From the NCBI GenBank assembly GCA_028023455.1, contig JAQFVV010000005.1:16678001-16742000 (forward strand): a stretch of 64,000 bases of DNA, given 5' to 3'. A program made the translations under genes and the position numbers. This stretch comes from Epiperipatus broadwayi. Its lineage: Eukaryota > Animalia > Onychophora. Position 1 is the stretch's first letter. Each line of letters opens with the position of its first letter. Positions 1,577 to 63,493 of the stretch are shown piece by piece. The notes beneath the pieces were generated by a model. That model did not search any database and was not told the DNA's origin. It saw only the letters and a list, made by a program, of their open reading frames with translations.

Positions 1577-1728
1577 CCAATGGAAGCCAAATAAAGGCCC
1601 GGACCATAGCGAAAAAACAGAACAGTGACGTTTTTGTTCATGGAATCCATAGGAGGACTATAAAAAGAAAAAAATATTGAGTTCCAGTCAGAGAGTTTTT
1701 CCAACTTGATTTGATGATAACGGTAAGA
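1577..1728 (+). promoter_or_regulatory. Putative Pol II core promoter and short non-coding first exon
   Basis: CCAAT at 1577, TGACGT at 1626, TATAAAA at 1659, Inr-like CCAGTC about 27 bp downstream, donor-like GTAAGA at 1723; lies in a CpG-retaining patch. Confidence 0.3.
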
Positions 1729-2569
1729 CGCACTTGCCGTTCTCTCTCATTTTTTTTTTTGTTTGTTTTAAAAAATAAAAATAAAATGAAAAGACTGTGA
1801 TACCAGAATGGAACCAGCTAATGCTACCTCCAGAACATTTTCTTCCAATGGAGACGCCGTGGGAATTGCCAACGGGAACATGGACTATATGAAATGAACA
1901 ATTATTAAAATCAATTAAGAACTTTCGTCAAGTTTTATAAATTGATAAACAAGCCAACTTAAAAGTTAAATGGACTCTTATCTGACTTTTGTAAGTTTTT
2001 TAAATCAAATTAATAATGTTTAATTTTAATGTTTTCCGATTGATAAACATCATTTCAATTTTTTTTTTCTTATTGTAAAGATTAGTTAAATGTATGAAAT
2101 TTAAGTTGTTTATAGACGCTTGCATGGATTCGTTTGCGGTTAATTATATTTTGGTTTTCATATTTGATCAAAATATATAGACATTCGATAAATAATGATA
2201 CCTTACGGTGAGAATCTAAAATGTATTTATTCGGATGTCTTTTAAGTTATTGGTGACAACGCAAGTATCTTATGATGAATACTATTGGGTTACTTATAAG
2301 TTTCCCTCTGCGATTGTCGGTATCAATAATTTTGTATTTTGATCGTTTATGTTTATTTTGAAATGTTTTTGACCGTGGAATCTATGTAATCGATCTATAC
2401 CCAACATTTTTAAACAAATCTGTGCGAACGTATTTAAATGTTAAAATTAAGTCGGGCGTGAATGGCTATATAGTTTGTAAAGTTATATTAAGGGAGGGTA
2501 ATCTTAGGTTATTCATTTCGTAGTTGAATTGGTTCAATGGATTGGATATATTTCTGTAATTAGTAGATG

Positions 2570-2950
2570 TAGTATGAGGTCCACTACGGGCAGGATTATA
2601 GATATACGCCACACACCCTCTGTTTGCCTATGGATGGGTTTGTAAGTCGGCAGAAGACCACAGTCCATTCCTATGGAGTTTTTTGTTTATTGATCTACTT
2701 GCCAACAGATGTCACATTCCTGTTGGTGGAGAGTCAATCTCTTCTCTATTTCTACTTATTGTTCAGATGTACATTCCTGACAATATAGTATTTTGTGTTG
2801 TCGTATCATGCTACATTGAATACATGAATGTATCAGATGGATTGGTGCCAGTTGATTGCGAAATTTGTTGCCTAAGGTTAAATCAGGGAAGAATATTTTC
2901 TTTTCAAATGCAGACCTATGTAGTCCATTCATACTCGACCCTCTAAATAA
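2570..2950 (-). mobile_element. Highly degenerate Penelope-like GIY-YIG 3' remnant
   Basis: Minus strand gives ...CQECTSEQ*VEIEKRLTLHQQEC..., resembling the PLE CxxC-YIGE-RxxEH region, with stops and frameshifts. Confidence 0.4.
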
Positions 2951-5176
2951 ATAGTAAACTCATTATTTGCAATCTACTTAAATTTAGAATTAAAGATCAA
3001 TCTAAAATTATAAGCGTTAAATTTATTCCTCAAAATTTAAATATTATTTTATATATGCGTAAATAAATATTTTTATGTGTTAATTTCTGGCAGTGGCTTT
3101 TATTCTTTTATATTTAAGATATAAAATTAAGTTATATTTTTTTATCTCTGCGTCTCCGCTGAGCTAGTGACTTGGGCTAACTGTCGGAATATTTAAAGAA
3201 AGTGGAATCTTAACAGCGCGTATCTGCCTACTTTATAAATTTTTCTAGGCTCAAATGCCTAGATGGCGCCCTTTGTAGTGCAGATATTGTTTTTGTGGTT
3301 AGATTCGATCTTCACTTTCATTCCGATTGGTACAATATTGAGAACAATATTGTTTTAAATAATTTCTTGAAAATAATAGTTAGAATCTCTGATCTAAAAG
3401 TAAAACAAGTAAATAGTTTTTGCTTGAATTATATGTCTAAAAATAAAGGATTGATTCATAGACTATTTTGTTTTAAAATAAAACTAAGTGAACTCCAAAA
3501 ATCTTTCTAGATTGGGTAACAAAAAACTCACTGGAGCATTTTAAAAAATGTTTGTAATAAATTAAGAGTAACATGAAAAAAGAAATTTTTATGAAGGACT
3601 GTCAAATAAGTAATATATATTTTTAAAAAAAAAAAGTAAAAAGAAAACTTTTTTACCATTAGAAATAATGAATTAATTAATAACTTTGATTCATACTATC
3701 TATTTTTTTATATACACACATATGTGTGCATTTATGTATTATTAAAAATGATTTGAATTTTTTATAAATCTATGACAATTCAAACATGTTAATTGTTAAA
3801 TTATTATACAGCATATCTGAGTGCTTATATAAATATGTTTTATGTAAACCTTTTCACATATGTGTAAATCACAATGTGATAGCTTATTTCATTTTGTATT
3901 AGACAAAATCAGAATGCTGAATTCATATTTTAGCATACTCAGCAGACCTTAATTTCATTTTATTGTTTCTAACTAATAAATTTATATTTCATTGTTTAAA
4001 GTTATTCCATTGAATTTAATTAATTCTAGAATAGATTTAAAATATGTTTGTATTATATCTCTTGCTTTCAGTAACATTTATGGAGCTTTTGATCACTGCA
4101 CTGGATTCATGCATATTGGTATGTTATATTAAAGGGATTTATATTTAGTGTTTCTGGACATCCATTTGATAATGATTTCATTATTTCTTTAATGCTGGAT
4201 GTACATTTTATTTTATTTATTTAGAAATTATGTTTATGGTTGGCCAGTGCATTAATGGCATTAAGTGGCCAGAGCACTGATGATGATCAGCATGTTTTCG
4301 TATCCCAGCATTATTTTTTAATTGTTATATTCTTAAGAATTAGCATATAAGTTTGTGCATCCAAATTATTGTTTAAATAATCTGCCTCAAGCTGGCAAGG
4401 ATTAAATAATTAGTCTGGTCTATAGCAGACCCATTTTAAATCCAGCCACAAAATTGACTGTTGGATTTATTTTTATTATTGATCATTCCTGATGATGAAT
4501 TTCATATCACTCTGTAATGCTGGTGAACCTATAATTACTTACTTATATTTAGTTCTGTGTTAATCTCTCAGTCTTATGTCTCATACTTATAGTCATTCCT
4601 CATTATATTATTTGTAAATTTAAATTAGTTCATTAACTGAGGATGATGATGATTTTTCCAGCACCTGAAATTCATCAGTTTCTTTGTACCATTACAATAT
4701 ATTTTTAGATTTATATACTATAATATATGTTTTACTTAATAATGTTTACATAAACACAATTCATTTTATTGCAACAATTCTTCTGAGTCTTTGTATTATT
4801 ACCATTATTAAATCTACACAACATTTTTTCCACTAAAAATAATTTCTACTTCTGATCACTGTACTTAGTTTTACACATAATAATTTATTGTCTTCCTTTA
4901 TCAATACATTTTGAGTTCCTAAACTATTTCTATACCCTGAAGTATAATTTGAGGTAATCCCTTTTCTAGGAATGTATCAGATCTCTGAATGTGAGTTAGA
5001 CATATGCATTGCTGAACCAGAAGCTTAGATTCTTAAATATATTAATAGTTTAAACCTTATATATATATATGTGTGTGTGGGTGGGTATGCATGTAATTGA
5101 TTGGAAATTTATTCACTCTTTAAAAACAAATTACTTTTGCAATATTTAAGTATAGGTTTCTAATATGAATATTTGA

Positions 5177-52325: not shown

Positions 52326-54930
52326 AAAGTAAAAAATGAAGTTTTCATTCATACTGCGATCATGCACAATAACAAAGCACTGTTCATTAATATATTTTAA
52401 AATGTGTGCATTAGCTAAAATATATTCATTCAATCAATTTTATATTAAAATTCTTATGAATATTAATTTCATTCATAGAAAAAAGTGATCATTGGTAGTC
52501 TAAATTATTTTGAATTTTAAAAAATGAGAAAAAAATGATTTCATGCATTATGCAATTAATAGTCAACTTTACATGATCAAACATTGATAAATATAAGTTA
52601 AATATATCATTTATTTGCCTAATTTTAAGTCAGTAATCTTGTAATTTGATTGAGACATATCCATGATCATGTGACTTTTATTACAAATATAAAAAATATA
52701 CTATCAGCCAAAAACAGATTTAATAATTAATATTGTTAAAGCTTATTAACTGCATATTACATTTCTTTATCTAATTTTGGTTGTCTTTATGTATATTTGT
52801 GAACTGTTGTTTTAAAAAAATAATAGAAATGCAAAAAAATCAAAATTTTATTAATTAAATGGTACAAATGTAAAAAACTTTGATAATAAATTATATAAAG
52901 TGCAAAAATAAATTTTAATATATATATTGCTTTTTTTTTCTATACAATTTATTTTAATTTAATGAATTATGATTCAATGAATATCATTCTCACATTATTT
53001 ATGAAACAAAACAACCAGATCATCAATTAAAAAATTTTAATTTTTACTAAAAAAAAAAAAAGTATATATACTGAAATGTTTTTACACATTTACCCAAAGG
53101 TTATTATTTTTTTAACAATATGCTCAGTAAAATTTTTAGTCATTAATTATCACTTTTTTTTTCAATTTCAAGCTTTAATGTTTAATCATATTTTTAAATA
53201 TTTTGATTTAAAGGTAACAAATTATTTTTTTTTTGCCATAGGGACTTATAATAATGATTTGCCTTTTTATTAGAGATTTTTTCTTTATAAGACTTTCTGA
53301 TAAACCAATTGTCCTCACTAACCAATGTAAAGATGTATTTATTCCAGTTTAACAGAATTTATATTTAGATGTGTTAACCATAAACAAACTACAAGGTTTG
53401 CTATTATACTTGAGCATATTTGAAACAAATGTAGTGGATACAAGGAGATACTTGTACTTATAATACTTGATATTAGATTTTAAATTTTATTTATTAACAA
53501 AGTTAAAAATAGTCAAATCTCTTTGAGTAAAAAAAAAGTTGAGATAATAATAAAAAATCAAATTTTATATTAAAAAAGATATAAGAAAATTTTACATTAA
53601 CAATGATAATTTAATTATAAAAAATGTTAAAAATTTGCTACCAATCCTCAGGAGTGAGTGCATAAAATTATCGCAATTGTAATAAATGCCATTTAAAAAC
53701 CATTCACTGGCAATTAATAAACCAATAAGCCTCATGATAAAGTAATTTGGACATCAGCATGCTGTACCCCTGACACAGATTCAAATCAGGAATGAAATTG
53801 GAAGATAGCTAAAGATTTTCTGAACAAAAGATCAAAAGTTTGCCCACAGTCAGTCAATGAATCTCAACCTAGTGCTTCTGGTAATTACATGTCACATGAC
53901 CTTTTAAGCAAGTAGATATTTAAATACTTTTCTTTTTTAAAGGATCTTAAATGGAAAGTAAGAGAGTAAAATTTCAGTTAATCCAATTTACTGAAATGTC
54001 TGTAAAAGTCAACATGATTGGACATTCTTCCCAGCTGATGGAAATCAACATTTATTGTCAAATCCACTGAATTACAATATATTTACAAAAATTAGACATT
54101 TAAAAAATAAATGTATTTTATATACTGCCTAATGTTTACAAAGAATAATTGAATAATACATTGAATCCATACAAACAATAATGCAGTGATAGATGGTGAA
54201 GTCAAGAACTAAAGAATTGCAGATTGTGGCTTTATCTGGTGGTTGAAAATTGTATCAAATGACCATTCAATTGTTTTAACTCTACTAATATTTACTATAA
54301 ATTATTTGAAATGAAGTCAGATGAAAGATTCTATTATATTTTTTAATTGAATTTAGCTAATAAATCCACTTTTTATATTATTTTCTTACTATAGATAGAC
54401 CATCATTAGTTAAATTTTCCAATTCCAGAGCTTCCATCTCTCATTACAAACTCAAAATTTGTGGAAAAATTAAATAAACATTAATTTTAACTATCAATAG
54501 TTTGCATATCTGTAAATATTTTTTCTATACTGTATAACTTGTTTTATTAATAACAATAATCAAAGTTTAAAACATATGATTATATTTATTATATCAGCAC
54601 AAAGATTTTATATAGCAGTATTTGATCTAAGGCAATACTTTGTAATTTTATTTGGATAATGGAAGGTCTTGATTTTATGGCTCATGGATTAAATATAATC
54701 TATTTGTATATATAATTATACACACAAAATATGAATCATGTATATAATACTAAAAAAATAAAACTGGCACCCTGATAAATTATTAAATGTAATAATCATA
54801 TAATATTTATGTATTGGACTATTTCCATCATCTAATATAAATATTGAAAGTCTTTAGAAAATTTTAACTTTATTTAAATATTCCAAATACATTCAACTGT
54901 TACTAATAGCAGTTCAAACAGGTTAATATA

Positions 54931-54979
54931 TGCACAACATTTCGAGTGGTATTATTCTCCCCTCTTCTTCAGGTGTTGC
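54931..54979 (-). ncRNA. Hammerhead motif in the left PLE arm (decayed)
   Basis: CAC-CTGAAGA-A-GAGGGG(AGAATAATA)CCACTC-GAAA-TGTT-GTG. Confidence 0.65.
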
Positions 54980-56919
54980 TGGCCTGACCAGTGACAGTAA
55001 TAGCGAGGAATTTGAAGCTGGACCCTTAGATTATTGATTATTGAATTTTAAGTTAATACTCTAACCAACTGAGCCATTCTGTCAAAGACAACATTCAGTA
55101 GAAATTTCATATACTTATCTATGAGGTCCCTCCCAATTTCTCCACTTTTTTCTAAGAGCAAGATTGATTTGTGGTTTCCATGTATTATGTATAGTCAGAG
55201 TAGGTTGACTTATGGGGTTGTTCATAATTCCTGATTGAACATATGTTCACTGGTACATACATGGTTTACTACCATAGACATATCTGTTTTCTCTCTTCTA
55301 ATCATCAGTTTGTGTTCTTGCAAGCACTTTTCAATGGGATGACAGATCTCACCAATATATATTTTGCACATTCACAGCATATTTCATGGATGCAGTTTCC
55401 TTCCTAGTATGGTATGGCTCTGGAAAGTTGCTCTGAGGTTATAGTAATTGCAGATTTTCCTTAATTTATCTGCTATTCTTAGCATGTATGGGTACACTAC
55501 AATACCAATAAGTGTTTTTATGGTTCTTTTTATTGTCTATTTAAGGTTTTCTTAGTAACAGCTGATGAATAACCATTTTTCTTAAGCAAAACACTGGTTT
55601 CTAAACAAACTTCTTTTGCTCTTTTCCATAGTGATAGCTTAACTCCAGTTTTTGTGTTTCTGGGTGTGATTGAATGTATAGGCTAAACATTTTCCTGTAT
55701 GTGTGAGTTTTCTGTAAATTGTAGTTTTGATTTTGTCATGAGGAAATCTTGTCACAAAAGCAACTAAGATTGCCAATTTTTGTTTTTGTTCTGATTCTAT
55801 TGTGAATTTAATTCAAGGGGATATATTGTTGATATGTTACCAAAAATTTTGTAGTATTGCTTTAGCATGTGATCACATAACAAATGTATCACCTACATAG
55901 CAAAGCCAAACTTTAAGTGGATATGGAGTAATCTTTATGGCTGTGGTATGGAAGACTTGAAACCACAACTATACACATTACTCCAAATCCATCTAAAGTT
56001 TGGCTTTGATATGTAGCTGATACATTTGTTACATGACCACATAGTAATGCACTACTATACAAACTTTCTGGAAACATATCAACAACATATGCCCTCCAAT
56101 TAAATTCACAATAGAATCAGAACAAAAATAAAAATTGCCATTCTTAGATGTTATTGTGACAAGACTCCCTCATGGCAAAATCAAAACTACATTTTACAGA
56201 AAACCCACACATATAGGAAACTACTTAGCCTATACATCCAATCATATCAGAAACACAAAACATAGAGTTATGCTATCTCTATGGAACAGAGCAAAAAAAG
56301 TTTGTTTAGAAACCAGCAATTTGAAAAGTTTTATATAGAACATCTTATGAAAAATGGTTATCCATCAGCTGTTATTAAGAAAATGTTAAATAGACAACAA
56401 AAAGAACCATCAAAAGAGAGGACAATTATTGGTACTGTAGTGTATCCATACATTCTAAAAATAAGACAAATTAAGGAAAATCTGCAATCAGTCCAACAGC
56501 AGAACAGATTTCCAGAGCCATACCACACTACAAGGAATTCTAATATCTATAAAGTCTAAAGTTGAAATGCTGAAAAGAAAAAACTGCATCTATGAAATAG
56601 CATGTGAATGTGGCAAAATGTGTAGTGGTGAGACCTGTTATCCCATTGAAAAGTGTTTGCAAGATCATAAACTGATAACGAGAAGAGAGAAAACAGTTGT
56701 GTCTAAGGTAGCAGACCATGTATGTACCAGTAAACACATGTTCAATTGGGAAAATACACAAATATTGGATAGAGAGGAAAAGATACAAAGAAGAAAATTT
56801 AAAGAAGCTGTTCATATGACAATGGCAAAAAATCCCATAAAACACTAATCAACTTTGCTCTTAGGAAAAAGTGAAGAAATCAGGAGATAAGTATAAAATT
56901 TCTATTGACTGTTGTCTTT

Positions 56920-57004
56920 GACAGGATGGGCCAGTTGGTTAAAGTGTTACCTTAAAATTCACTATTCAAGAATCTAAGGATCCCGGTTCAATTCCCATGC
57001 TAGT
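56920..57004 (+). other. tRNA-Leu(TAA)-like segment in the PLE 3' region (mirror copy at 55000-55083, minus strand)
   Basis: GACAGGATGGGCCAGTTGGTTAAAGTGTTACCTTAAAATTC...GGTTCAATTCCC resembles ACCAGGATGGCCGAGTGGTTAAGGCGTTGGACTTAAGATCC; A and B boxes recognisable. Confidence 0.6.
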
Positions 57005-57023
57005 ACTATTACTGGTCAGGCCA

Positions 57024-57072
57024 GCAACACCTAAAGAAGAGGGGAGAATAATACTTTGTGGAACATTGTGCA
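57024..57072 (+). ncRNA. Hammerhead motif in the right PLE arm (more decayed)
   Basis: CAC-CTAAAGA-AGAGGGGAGAATAATACTTTGT-GGAACATT-GTG, mirror of 54931-54979. Confidence 0.5.
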
Positions 57073-58949
57073 TATAGTAACCTATATGCTATTACTCACA
57101 GTTGAATGTATTTTGGAATATTAAAAAAAAATTAAACTTTTCTAAAGACATTCAGTAGTGATATTAGATTATGATAATCCAATATATAATACAACTAAAA
57201 TACCTTCATCACAAACCTTCATGAAAACACTAATAATCATGTAGTATGTTACTTGGGAGGTCAAGTTATATTTAAGTACTGAATGTGTCAGCGTTTAGAT
57301 CTTAAGTTTGCCACTGCACATAACTGCAAAAGGCTTCGAGTGAATTAGAAACCATTAACTTTCTATTACTTTTGGTTTTGCTCTCCATCGTGTACTTCTC
57401 TGAATTGAATTTTTTTTTCAAATCTTCTTTCAAAAATCATTTAACCTTGTAATTACAGTTTTTATTTTTATTTATACTACTACAAAATCATCTATTGTAA
57501 GCTTGAATAATCAATGAACACTAGATGGCAGTGTTGCATTTACATTTCCAAGTTTTGATTATTAGCCTTCATCAAAAAAGAAAAAAAAACACTGGATTTG
57601 AACCCACACATTCTAACAGCTACTTTTTACTTCTTTTGTACTTTATAATCTGAGATTTTAACCCTCTAAAGTTTTGAACAAGAGTATTTCGCTCACCAGA
57701 AAAGTTAACAGGAAATCACGTGTCGCTTTTTTTTTTTTTTTGCAGTCACGTTATATATTTTAAAGAATTTTTTTAAGATAGGATGCATACGTGGGGATTT
57801 TAAAACTTGCATACAAAAGGAAGATTTGGAAACTCATTCAATGTTTATAATCTAGAGTGACTGACCTTTTTCAAAGAATACAAAAACAATCCTCCGCAGT
57901 CTGCGACTTCAGGTCATCGCAATCAGACTTTTAGCATCGGGTCAATTAATAGCACTGCGTAGTCTTAAAAGAGTTGTCTTTTAAGATGGCATAGGTCTAT
58001 TGATTGATTTGACGTTAAAAAGTTTATTTTATAAAAGATGTCTATTATTTATATTCTAATGAGAAAATAAGGAGCCATTTAAGTACAAAAATGATGGGTT
58101 ATTTTGACAATACGAAATATAAATTGGAATGATTACAGAAGCGTTTTTTTTTTTAGTTGGTTGGATGAATGGAAATTCAAAGCTATCTAAATTTTAAAAC
58201 AGATTCCTATCTTTTATTTTTAAAAAATGTCTTTTAACAAAATTTTTACGGATAATGAAAAATACTCCCTTCTAAAGTTTCTTTTTTCTTCATTACGGAG
58301 TCTGACTATATGAAACAGACGCAAGCCTTTGATTTTATTTTTTTTAATGTTCCAGATGTAGAAATCAGACTCAGTAAATAAAAATAAGATGACTACAACT
58401 ATCTCTCTCTCTCTCTCTCTGCTGCGCAACTTTAACAATTAATGAATTATTCGCCATAATAAAATTATCTATTTAATTTTAATAATTGTTTGCATGTATA
58501 TAGCTGCGCGTGTGCAAAATAAAATGGATAAATGATAAAATAATCATCGCAGAGAACCCCTCATAAAAAAAGGTATAAGAGATGTGCTGTCTTTGTTTAC
58601 CTTTTAGTTTAAAATAGATATCCGTTTACTGATCAATAACAGATGGTTAGCTGAGTTAATTATGGGCCAGATACTGAACAAAAAATTTTAACCTTTGTTT
58701 AAAATAACCTGAGTTTCCTGGCCCTGGATTTATTTCTGTCTCAGATCTCTATATTAATTATGAAGTTCCACATATAATTTATTATTCTGCTAAGCAGAAA
58801 ATGTCATGTTTATTTTTAATCAAATTACTAATAATAAGATCGTTGTCAGAAAACTGGTTATGATTCTTTTTTTAATGAACCAAAGAATAAATTTACATAT
58901 ATCCATAACACACTCCTTAAAAGAATTCCATGCTTCAGTAATATGACAA

Positions 58950-63440: not shown

Positions 63441-63493
63441 TCCCAACTCCTCACTGAAGAGACCCATAGGTCGAAACCGGTCTGGGGATGGGA
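63441..63493 (+). ncRNA. Minimal type I hammerhead ribozyme, apparently intact
   Basis: TCCCA-AC-TCCTCA-CTGAAGA-GACC(CATA)GGTC-GAAA-CCGGTC^-TGGGGA-TGGGA: canonical core, GUC site (cleavage after 63482), stems I and II pair, palindromic ACCGGT stem III. Confidence 0.88.

Follow-up and report, generated by a model that had tools for sequence, protein, structure and literature searches.

We analysed a 64,000-nt stretch of the genome of the onychophoran Epiperipatus broadwayi (contig JAQFVV010000005.1, positions 16,678,001 to 16,742,000; hereafter the window). At 54807-57189 it contains two inverted arms of a Penelope-like element (PLE) joined head to head. A repeat search of the window together with local alignment indicated that this palindrome is real and far above chance, and the search returned a nested series of inverted matches centred at 55948-55961. 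Local alignment of the right arm with the reverse-complemented left arm gave an identity of 86.3% (958/1110 aligned columns), confirming the inverted arms that a first-pass annotation of the sequence had judged by eye to be about 80-85% identical. The corresponding Kimura two-parameter (K2P) distance is 0.152, and the mismatches consist of 81 transitions and 71 transversions. The alignment also contains 34 small gaps, the largest a 34-nt indel, and the right arm is ~87 nt longer overall through many small indels. More deletions are found in the antisense arm than in the sense arm.

Positions within the element are given on the ruler, one natural full-length genomic copy used for coordinates. 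The ruler's own 3' end is tail-less, and the tail was scored against the 5' pseudo-long-terminal-repeat (pLTR). Both arms cover the same interval of the element, ruler 1624-3021. The whole sense arm, including the central 14 nt (55948-57189), starts at ruler 1609 and runs to the 3' end, exceeding the antisense arm by 15 nt at the fold (ruler 1609 versus 1624). The first-pass annotation had described the central 14 nt as a loop. They are indeed unpaired, but because they correspond to ruler 1609-1623 they belong to the sense arm as element sequence and are not a separate feature. The head-to-head junction is blunt, with neither filler nor microhomology and no base that can be assigned to both arms; since the locus is old, a very short junction microhomology could have been lost by mutation.

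Translation of the sense arm revealed a decayed YVDD box ~45 nt from the fold, the thumb region of the reverse transcriptase (RT; ..FLDV..YRKPTH..) and a GIY-YIG-type box (CIYEIACECG..GET). These landmarks bear out the earlier description of a palindrome extending from the middle of the RT, just before YVDD, through GIY-YIG and the 3' region. The GIY-YIG-type box lies within an open reading frame (ORF) remnant of the sense arm (56567-56848), and the antisense arm has the same features in antisense. The coding capacity of both arms is wholly lost, and a Pfam search of their short ORF remnants returned no match. Both arms also lack a block of ~60-69 nt that is present near the 3' end of young copies, an older variant also seen in L004, L023 and L027. 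The locus has no direct pLTR in the form of a partial tandem, only the inverted arm.

The left limit of family homology lies at 54804-54807 and the right limit at 57229-57233. The ~42 nt by which the sense arm had been reported to outrun its partner proved to be a 41-nt family tail, as defined for PLEs in PMC8557442 and PMC11167929; its homologues are ruler 183-228 and the ends of those other family copies that bear a tail. A 17-bp target-site duplication (TSD) adjoins both element ends, which were set independently by family homology. Its two copies match at 15 of 17 positions, and the form with the two variable positions is TAATAATCAT[A/G]TA[A/G]TAT. In the window, only 1 in 20,000 random anchored position pairs reached 15/17, even with a slack of +/-4 nt, which substantiates the near-perfect duplication noted in the first pass. 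Next to the insertion, the left flank is single-copy for ~95 nt and the right flank for ~220 nt. Both flanks hold old dispersed repeats (54431-54709 and 57455-57591) that are 70-90% identical to many loci. The features of the locus are listed in Table 1.

Table 1. The palindromic PLE insertion, its flanking duplication and its 3' modules (positions in the window; UTR, untranslated region)
Feature	Position	Strand	Remarks
Left TSD copy, TAATAATCATATAATAT	54790-54806		15/17 versus 57231-57247; directly outside the element end set by family homology
Antisense arm, 5'-truncated PLE copy	54807-55947	-	from ruler ~1624 to 4 nt past the tail-less 3' end; no tail
Hammerhead-like core boxes (CTGAAGA, helix II AGAGG/CCACT, CGAAA)	54940-54972	-	pattern search; 3' region of the antisense arm
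Unpaired central 14 nt	55948-55961	+	element sequence (ruler 1609-1623) continuing the sense arm, not filler
Sense arm, paired part	55962-57189	+	decayed YVDD, RT thumb, linker, GIY-YIG-type domain, 3' UTR
tRNA-like module	~56915-57030	+	motif only; 3' UTR of the sense arm
Decayed hammerhead-like boxes	57031-57063	+	motif only; 3' UTR of the sense arm
PLE tail	57190-57230	+	41 nt past the arm pairing, 45 nt past the canonical tail-less end at 57185; sense arm only
Right TSD copy, TAATAATCATGTAGTAT	57231-57247		15/17 versus the left copy

The element family and its head-to-head pairs

Judged by their sequence, the arms belong to a canonical EN+ PLE family of ~3 kb with an RT and a predicted GIY-YIG-type C-terminal domain. 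The full-length unit measures ~3.0 kb and has terminal repeats of ~180-228 nt (4 loci). The family is very abundant in the 5.6 Gb assembly, where the right arm as query retrieved 15,056 first-look candidates, and its young copies are 93-99% alike. Unlike the window locus, other copies do possess a pLTR formed by a partial tandem: the 3' end recurs at ruler 1-228, and partial tandems are present at L031, L032 and L034. The RT is encoded in an 817-aa open frame in one copy and matches Pfam RVT_1 (E 3.9e-14). A word search identified 594 homologues at E<=1e-10 that combine RVT_1, DUF8422 and HTH_animal, some of them with GIY-YIG as well, in hosts that include beetles, corals, a sea star, fishes and Anolis. 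The nearest Atlas clusters have RVT_1, HTH_animal and DUF8422 with or without GIY-YIG (score 0.98).

The C-terminal domain of the family had no direct match to Pfam, PHROGs or PDB profiles or sequences. Nevertheless, it shares 36% identity (E 1e-27) with residues 467-584 of the protein P0089, in which residues 505-562 pass the Pfam GIY-YIG model (25.5 bits versus a cutoff of 22.6), and a CIYEIPCECGRTYIGET box is visible in it. The Arg positions that are usually conserved in GIY-YIG nucleases differ, the family having ETSHPIEKCLQEH where the Pfam-passing relative has ETKRRLETRLREH (L031:4831-5292). Many family copies are 99-100% identical and look recently active despite the altered Arg positions.

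The head-to-head layout is not peculiar to the window. Among loci retrieved with the right arm, 23 of 33 others have a head-to-head junction, as do 21 of 29 for which the 3'-terminal 422 nt of the element served as query; together, ~70% of the 62 other sampled loci carry such a pair. The layout is the majority state of the family in the E. broadwayi genome, and the window locus is a clean but ordinary representative. These counts contradict the premise of the first-pass annotation that inverted repeats of PLEs usually involve the pLTR only. So does the literature: an inverted, 5'-truncated copy adjoining the 5' end has been described as a frequent PLE feature, along with the one-sided tail (PMC8557442, Craig et al. 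2021), and the head-to-head arrangement has been reported as the most frequent, with self-priming proposed from palindromes at the junctions (PMC3846280, Arkhipova et al. 2013). The layout, the one-sided tail and the self-priming idea are thus already on record; the locus is a further instance, and the premise of rarity was wrong.

The shorter arm of the family pairs ranges from 73 nt to more than 2.5 kb. Near-symmetric long pairs include L013 (antisense arm starting at ruler 432, sense arm at 453), L019 (684 and 694) and L055 (1613 and 1625). The last of these, L055:1501-3394 (G000:C34:9802355-9805748), is an independent locus that folds almost exactly where the window does (1624|1609), with the unpaired nucleotides on the other arm. 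The shared fold point may reflect a preferred stop or a template end. The first-pass annotation had called for a search for other palindromes comprising the whole element, and we found opposite-strand matches of the same internal 400 nt lying 2.8 and 1.8 kb apart at G000:C11:716492-720071 and G000:C12429:3267953-3270579. Position arithmetic suggests that the former is a nearly full-length pair in a unit of ~6 kb and that the latter has arms of ~2.5 kb.

Single TSDs surround other head-to-head units of the family as well, with lengths of 16 bp at L027, 18 bp (perfect) at L008 and 20-23 bp at L024, so the 17 bp of the window are typical. By comparison, TSDs of 8-10 bp have been reported for rotifer PLE copies. 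In other respects the locus resembles the complex tandem and inverted insertions described for EN+ PLEs (Evgen'ev & Arkhipova 2005; PMC3846280; PMC8557442), which have a tail of 30-40 bp on just one end, a TSD around the whole unit and a protein that combines an RT with a GIY-YIG domain at the C terminus. It departs from them in having no direct pLTR and in the nearly equal truncation of its arms in mid-RT, which makes it almost a pure palindrome. For annotation, such palindromes are to be expected wherever the family occurs and should not be flagged as anomalies or misassemblies.

Formation of the paired copies

We consider it probable that one old integration left the two 5'-truncated copies head to head through priming on both target strands. 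The GIY-YIG nuclease of the element would nick the two strands of the target 17 bp apart, and reverse transcription would be primed at both nicks, using two alternative start sites inside the template RNA, which would give a tail to exactly one arm. Both complementary DNAs (cDNAs) would stop in mid-RT, at ruler 1609 and 1624, and each 3' end would then be completed by copying the other cDNA, a template jump without microhomology that would generate the blunt head-to-head junction. Consistent with this scheme, the palindrome is bounded on both sides by a canonical 3' end of the element, with the 41-nt tail present on one side and missing from the other. Exactly one arm is tailed in 24 of the 25 family pairs in which both ends are readable, and in 18 of these 24 the tail is on the shorter arm. 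In such pairs the shorter arm has 41-45 nt that its partner lacks; it is therefore not a snap-back copy of the partner and must be RNA-templated.

A biochemical precedent exists for these steps. The purified protein of the Anolis PLE Poseidon cleaves and extends both target strands and reverse transcribes from two internal start sites, the spacing of which equals the tail (PMC11167929, Frangieh et al. 2024). The Poseidon protein predicts two outward 3' ends of which one is tailed, as is seen in the window and in 24 of 25 pairs. The host and the PLE family are different, with ~36% protein identity between our family and an Anolis homologue, and PMC11167929 leaves out how the two cDNAs join or why their lengths would match. 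Taken together, the tail asymmetry and the two-strand extension in vitro favour two-strand priming over snap-back at the level of the family.

Snap-back was the mechanism put forward in the first-pass annotation, which held that second-strand synthesis had copied almost the whole cDNA. Its assumption of a single event stands, whereas the snap-back itself, already a published hypothesis for PLEs in the form of self-priming (PMC3846280), appears unlikely to us. The cDNA from the right-hand nick would start at the tail, stop at ruler 1609, fold with a 14-nt loop and copy itself outward, halting short of the tail, and the hairpin strand would then be made into duplex DNA. This would account for arm ends within 15 nt of each other, the lack of filler and a loop made of template sequence. 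It also agrees with the window's tail being on the longer, would-be primary arm, to which the shorter arm adds nothing, and with L055 folding at the same place. Moreover, near-symmetric junctions are over-represented. Among 23 long-copy loci, the two arms are truncated within 25 nt of each other at 3, versus a shuffled mean of 0.48 (P 0.009); with the window left out, the figures are 2 of 22 versus 0.31 (P 0.04). In the 3'-end sample, 13 of 29 loci are within 50 nt versus 5.5 when shuffled (P 1.5e-4), a result partly confounded by short SINE-like (short interspersed element-like) units whose common natural 5' end lies near ruler 2640-2650. However, there is no terminal microhomology to anchor the folded 3' end, and snap-back does not by itself explain how the secondary strand joined the other target end with a direct TSD. 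The pairs with a tail on the shorter arm only (18 of 24) argue against it too, as parsimony favours one mechanism for all.

Priming on both strands faces difficulties of its own. Two independent cDNAs do not predict arms that are symmetric to within 15 nt, and the coupling of the truncation points calls for an additional assumption, such as synchronous synthesis or a common template end. The tail of the window lies on the marginally longer arm, an arrangement that snap-back also allows. The priming step is borrowed, by analogy, from in vitro work on a lizard element and not from the family of the window. The assembly contains no empty allele, paralogous empty site or alternative haplotig, so that the TSD rests on statistics. 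Finally, 40 copies compared over ruler 2000-2827 gave a star-shaped maximum-likelihood (ML) tree, in which the window arms do not group together and each has a long terminal branch (0.12 and 0.17).

More tentatively, near-symmetric PLE palindromes may constitute a distinct product class with mechanistically coupled arm lengths; a preferred stop near ruler 1609-1625 is also possible. The coupling could come from fold-back self-priming. Alternatively, the two RTs of a dimer might proceed synchronously on the two nicked strands until one jumps onto the nascent cDNA of the other. If this product class exists, arm-length differences and tail side across the genome would form a natural record of the second half of PLE integration.

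Next, we weighed one event against two. The kinship of the arms, left undecided by the star-shaped ML tree, was settled by counting private shared changes against controls. Changes were polarised by the per-column majority state of young natural copies, as yes or no only. Over the 1033 usable columns of the whole arms, 68 changes are found in the sense arm only and 83 in the antisense arm only, while both arms have changed to the same state at 24 columns and to different states at 8. Of the 24 same-state changes, 4 are older-subfamily markers and 10 are present in no other copy. In control comparisons of each arm with unrelated old copies we observed 0-3 private coincidences, and ~3 are expected when scaled (Poisson P(>=10) ~0.001). 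The arms are also about equally far from a young copy (12.1 versus 10.9%). The private shared changes, the equal divergence, the single TSD and the base-exact junction support a single integration in which both arms derive from one slightly marked template and have since decayed independently.

We regard it as very improbable that two independent insertions abutted head to head, or that an older copy's 5' end became the target of a later one. The missing arm-arm clade in the tree, which covers part of the arms, would fit such a history, as would the strongly unequal arm divergence of other pairs such as L004 (8.6 versus 4.8%) and L031 (3.9 versus 1.4%). Against it, the single TSD flanks the pair and not each arm, the junction is exact to the base and divergence from young copies is equal for the two arms of the window. 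In addition, ~70% of loci are paired, far above chance adjacency for a family that occupies well under 1% of the genome. The first-pass annotation had named arms from different PLE subfamilies as the sign of two adjacent insertions; the same 3' variant and the 4 older-subfamily markers are present in both arms, although the ML tree did not join them.

Private substitutions since insertion amount to ~7-9% per arm, in addition to many small deletions, and the K2P distance per arm is ~0.076 (half of 0.152). Most of the family differs by 0.2-3% from the common state, which places the window insertion among the older ones. The arms had been proposed to serve as an internal clock for insertion age. 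In the window they are equally diverged, with the caveat that the arms of some other pairs are unequal.

Markedly unequal arms were seen in L004, L031, L003, L020, L060, L074 and L076, and the greater divergence is usually that of the shorter arm (13 versus 6, not significant overall). If both arms are born together, the marked inequality in L004, L031 and the others has no explanation. Arms may thus not always be born identical or decay equally.

Least probable of all is a DNA-level inverted duplication of an existing truncated copy, by fold-back repair or a replication template switch, or else an assembly artefact. In favour of this reading, no contig among those listed spans the palindrome centre. 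Against it, Logan short-read contigs of two DNA runs bridge the outer junction on either side (54300-54830 and 57192-57513), each arm terminates precisely at a canonical 3' end of the element between flanks that form a direct repeat, no host flank DNA is duplicated in inverted orientation, one arm has a tail that the other lacks, and, as the first-pass annotation had argued from arm divergence, no assembler fold-back makes arms that differ by 14% with private indels.

We also considered the twin-priming inversion known from L1 elements. In this process both nicked target strands reportedly act as primers and leave an inverted segment within one insertion and one TSD, and the inverted and direct segments are said to derive from different, adjacent parts of the RNA, so that no palindrome results. 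By contrast, the two arms of the window represent one and the same region, each beginning at a 3' start site of the RNA; an L1-type inversion was rejected on this ground.

The locus alone matters little, being a dead insertion diverged by ~15% with no sign of expression. Its value is that of a clean exemplar, in which every diagnostic component of the PLE integration scar is legible together: the pair of 3' ends, the tail on one side, the single TSD and the blunt head-to-head junction. The genome holds thousands of such units. How PLEs finish integrating is a step that the field calls undefined, and models of it could be tested in a census of these units.

Hairpin potential and 3' modules

The first-pass annotation had suggested that the locus, if transcribed, would yield more than 1 kb of double-stranded RNA. 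For RNA spanning the centre, the predicted structure is a long but imperfect hairpin (991 nt; -541 kcal/mol; z -43). Its longest uninterrupted helices measure 31, 22, 21 and 21 bp, and admitting G-U pairs raises the maximum to 40 bp. The fold thus agrees with the suggestion, but no support emerged for transcription, siRNAs or ADAR editing: the unique flanks had zero depth in two small putative RNA runs kept as contigs. The content of these runs matches other family copies at 90-92%, and at 90% likeness the Logan contigs are swamped by such copies. No function has been demonstrated for the locus, and a hairpin RNA could arise only if something transcribes through it. A signature of hypermutation or editing was considered and rejected, as G>A and C>T changes predominate among the substitutions, just as in other old copies, and there is no excess of A>G.

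In the 3' region of the element, A- and B-box-like motifs of a tRNA-like module (GGCCAGTTGG … GGTTCAATTCC) are followed by hammerhead-like boxes at 56915-57063 in the sense arm and 54940-55085 in the antisense arm, corresponding to ruler ~2640-2830. The CTGAAGA..CGAAA boxes with a 5-bp helix II are also present in young copies. Rfam and ARAGORN called no tRNA or hammerhead on the locus or on young copies, so the tRNA-like and hammerhead-like assignments rest on motifs only. Many short family copies begin at ruler 2625-2711, and contig depth over the last ~300 nt of the element is about tenfold above that of the rest. The starts of the short copies and the excess of 3' depth suggest a SINE-like non-autonomous unit that shares the 3' end of the PLE. 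Far from the palindrome, at 63441-63493, the window contains a standalone hammerhead-like motif (…CTGAAGAG ACC CATA GGT CGAAAC…) with a plausible helix I.

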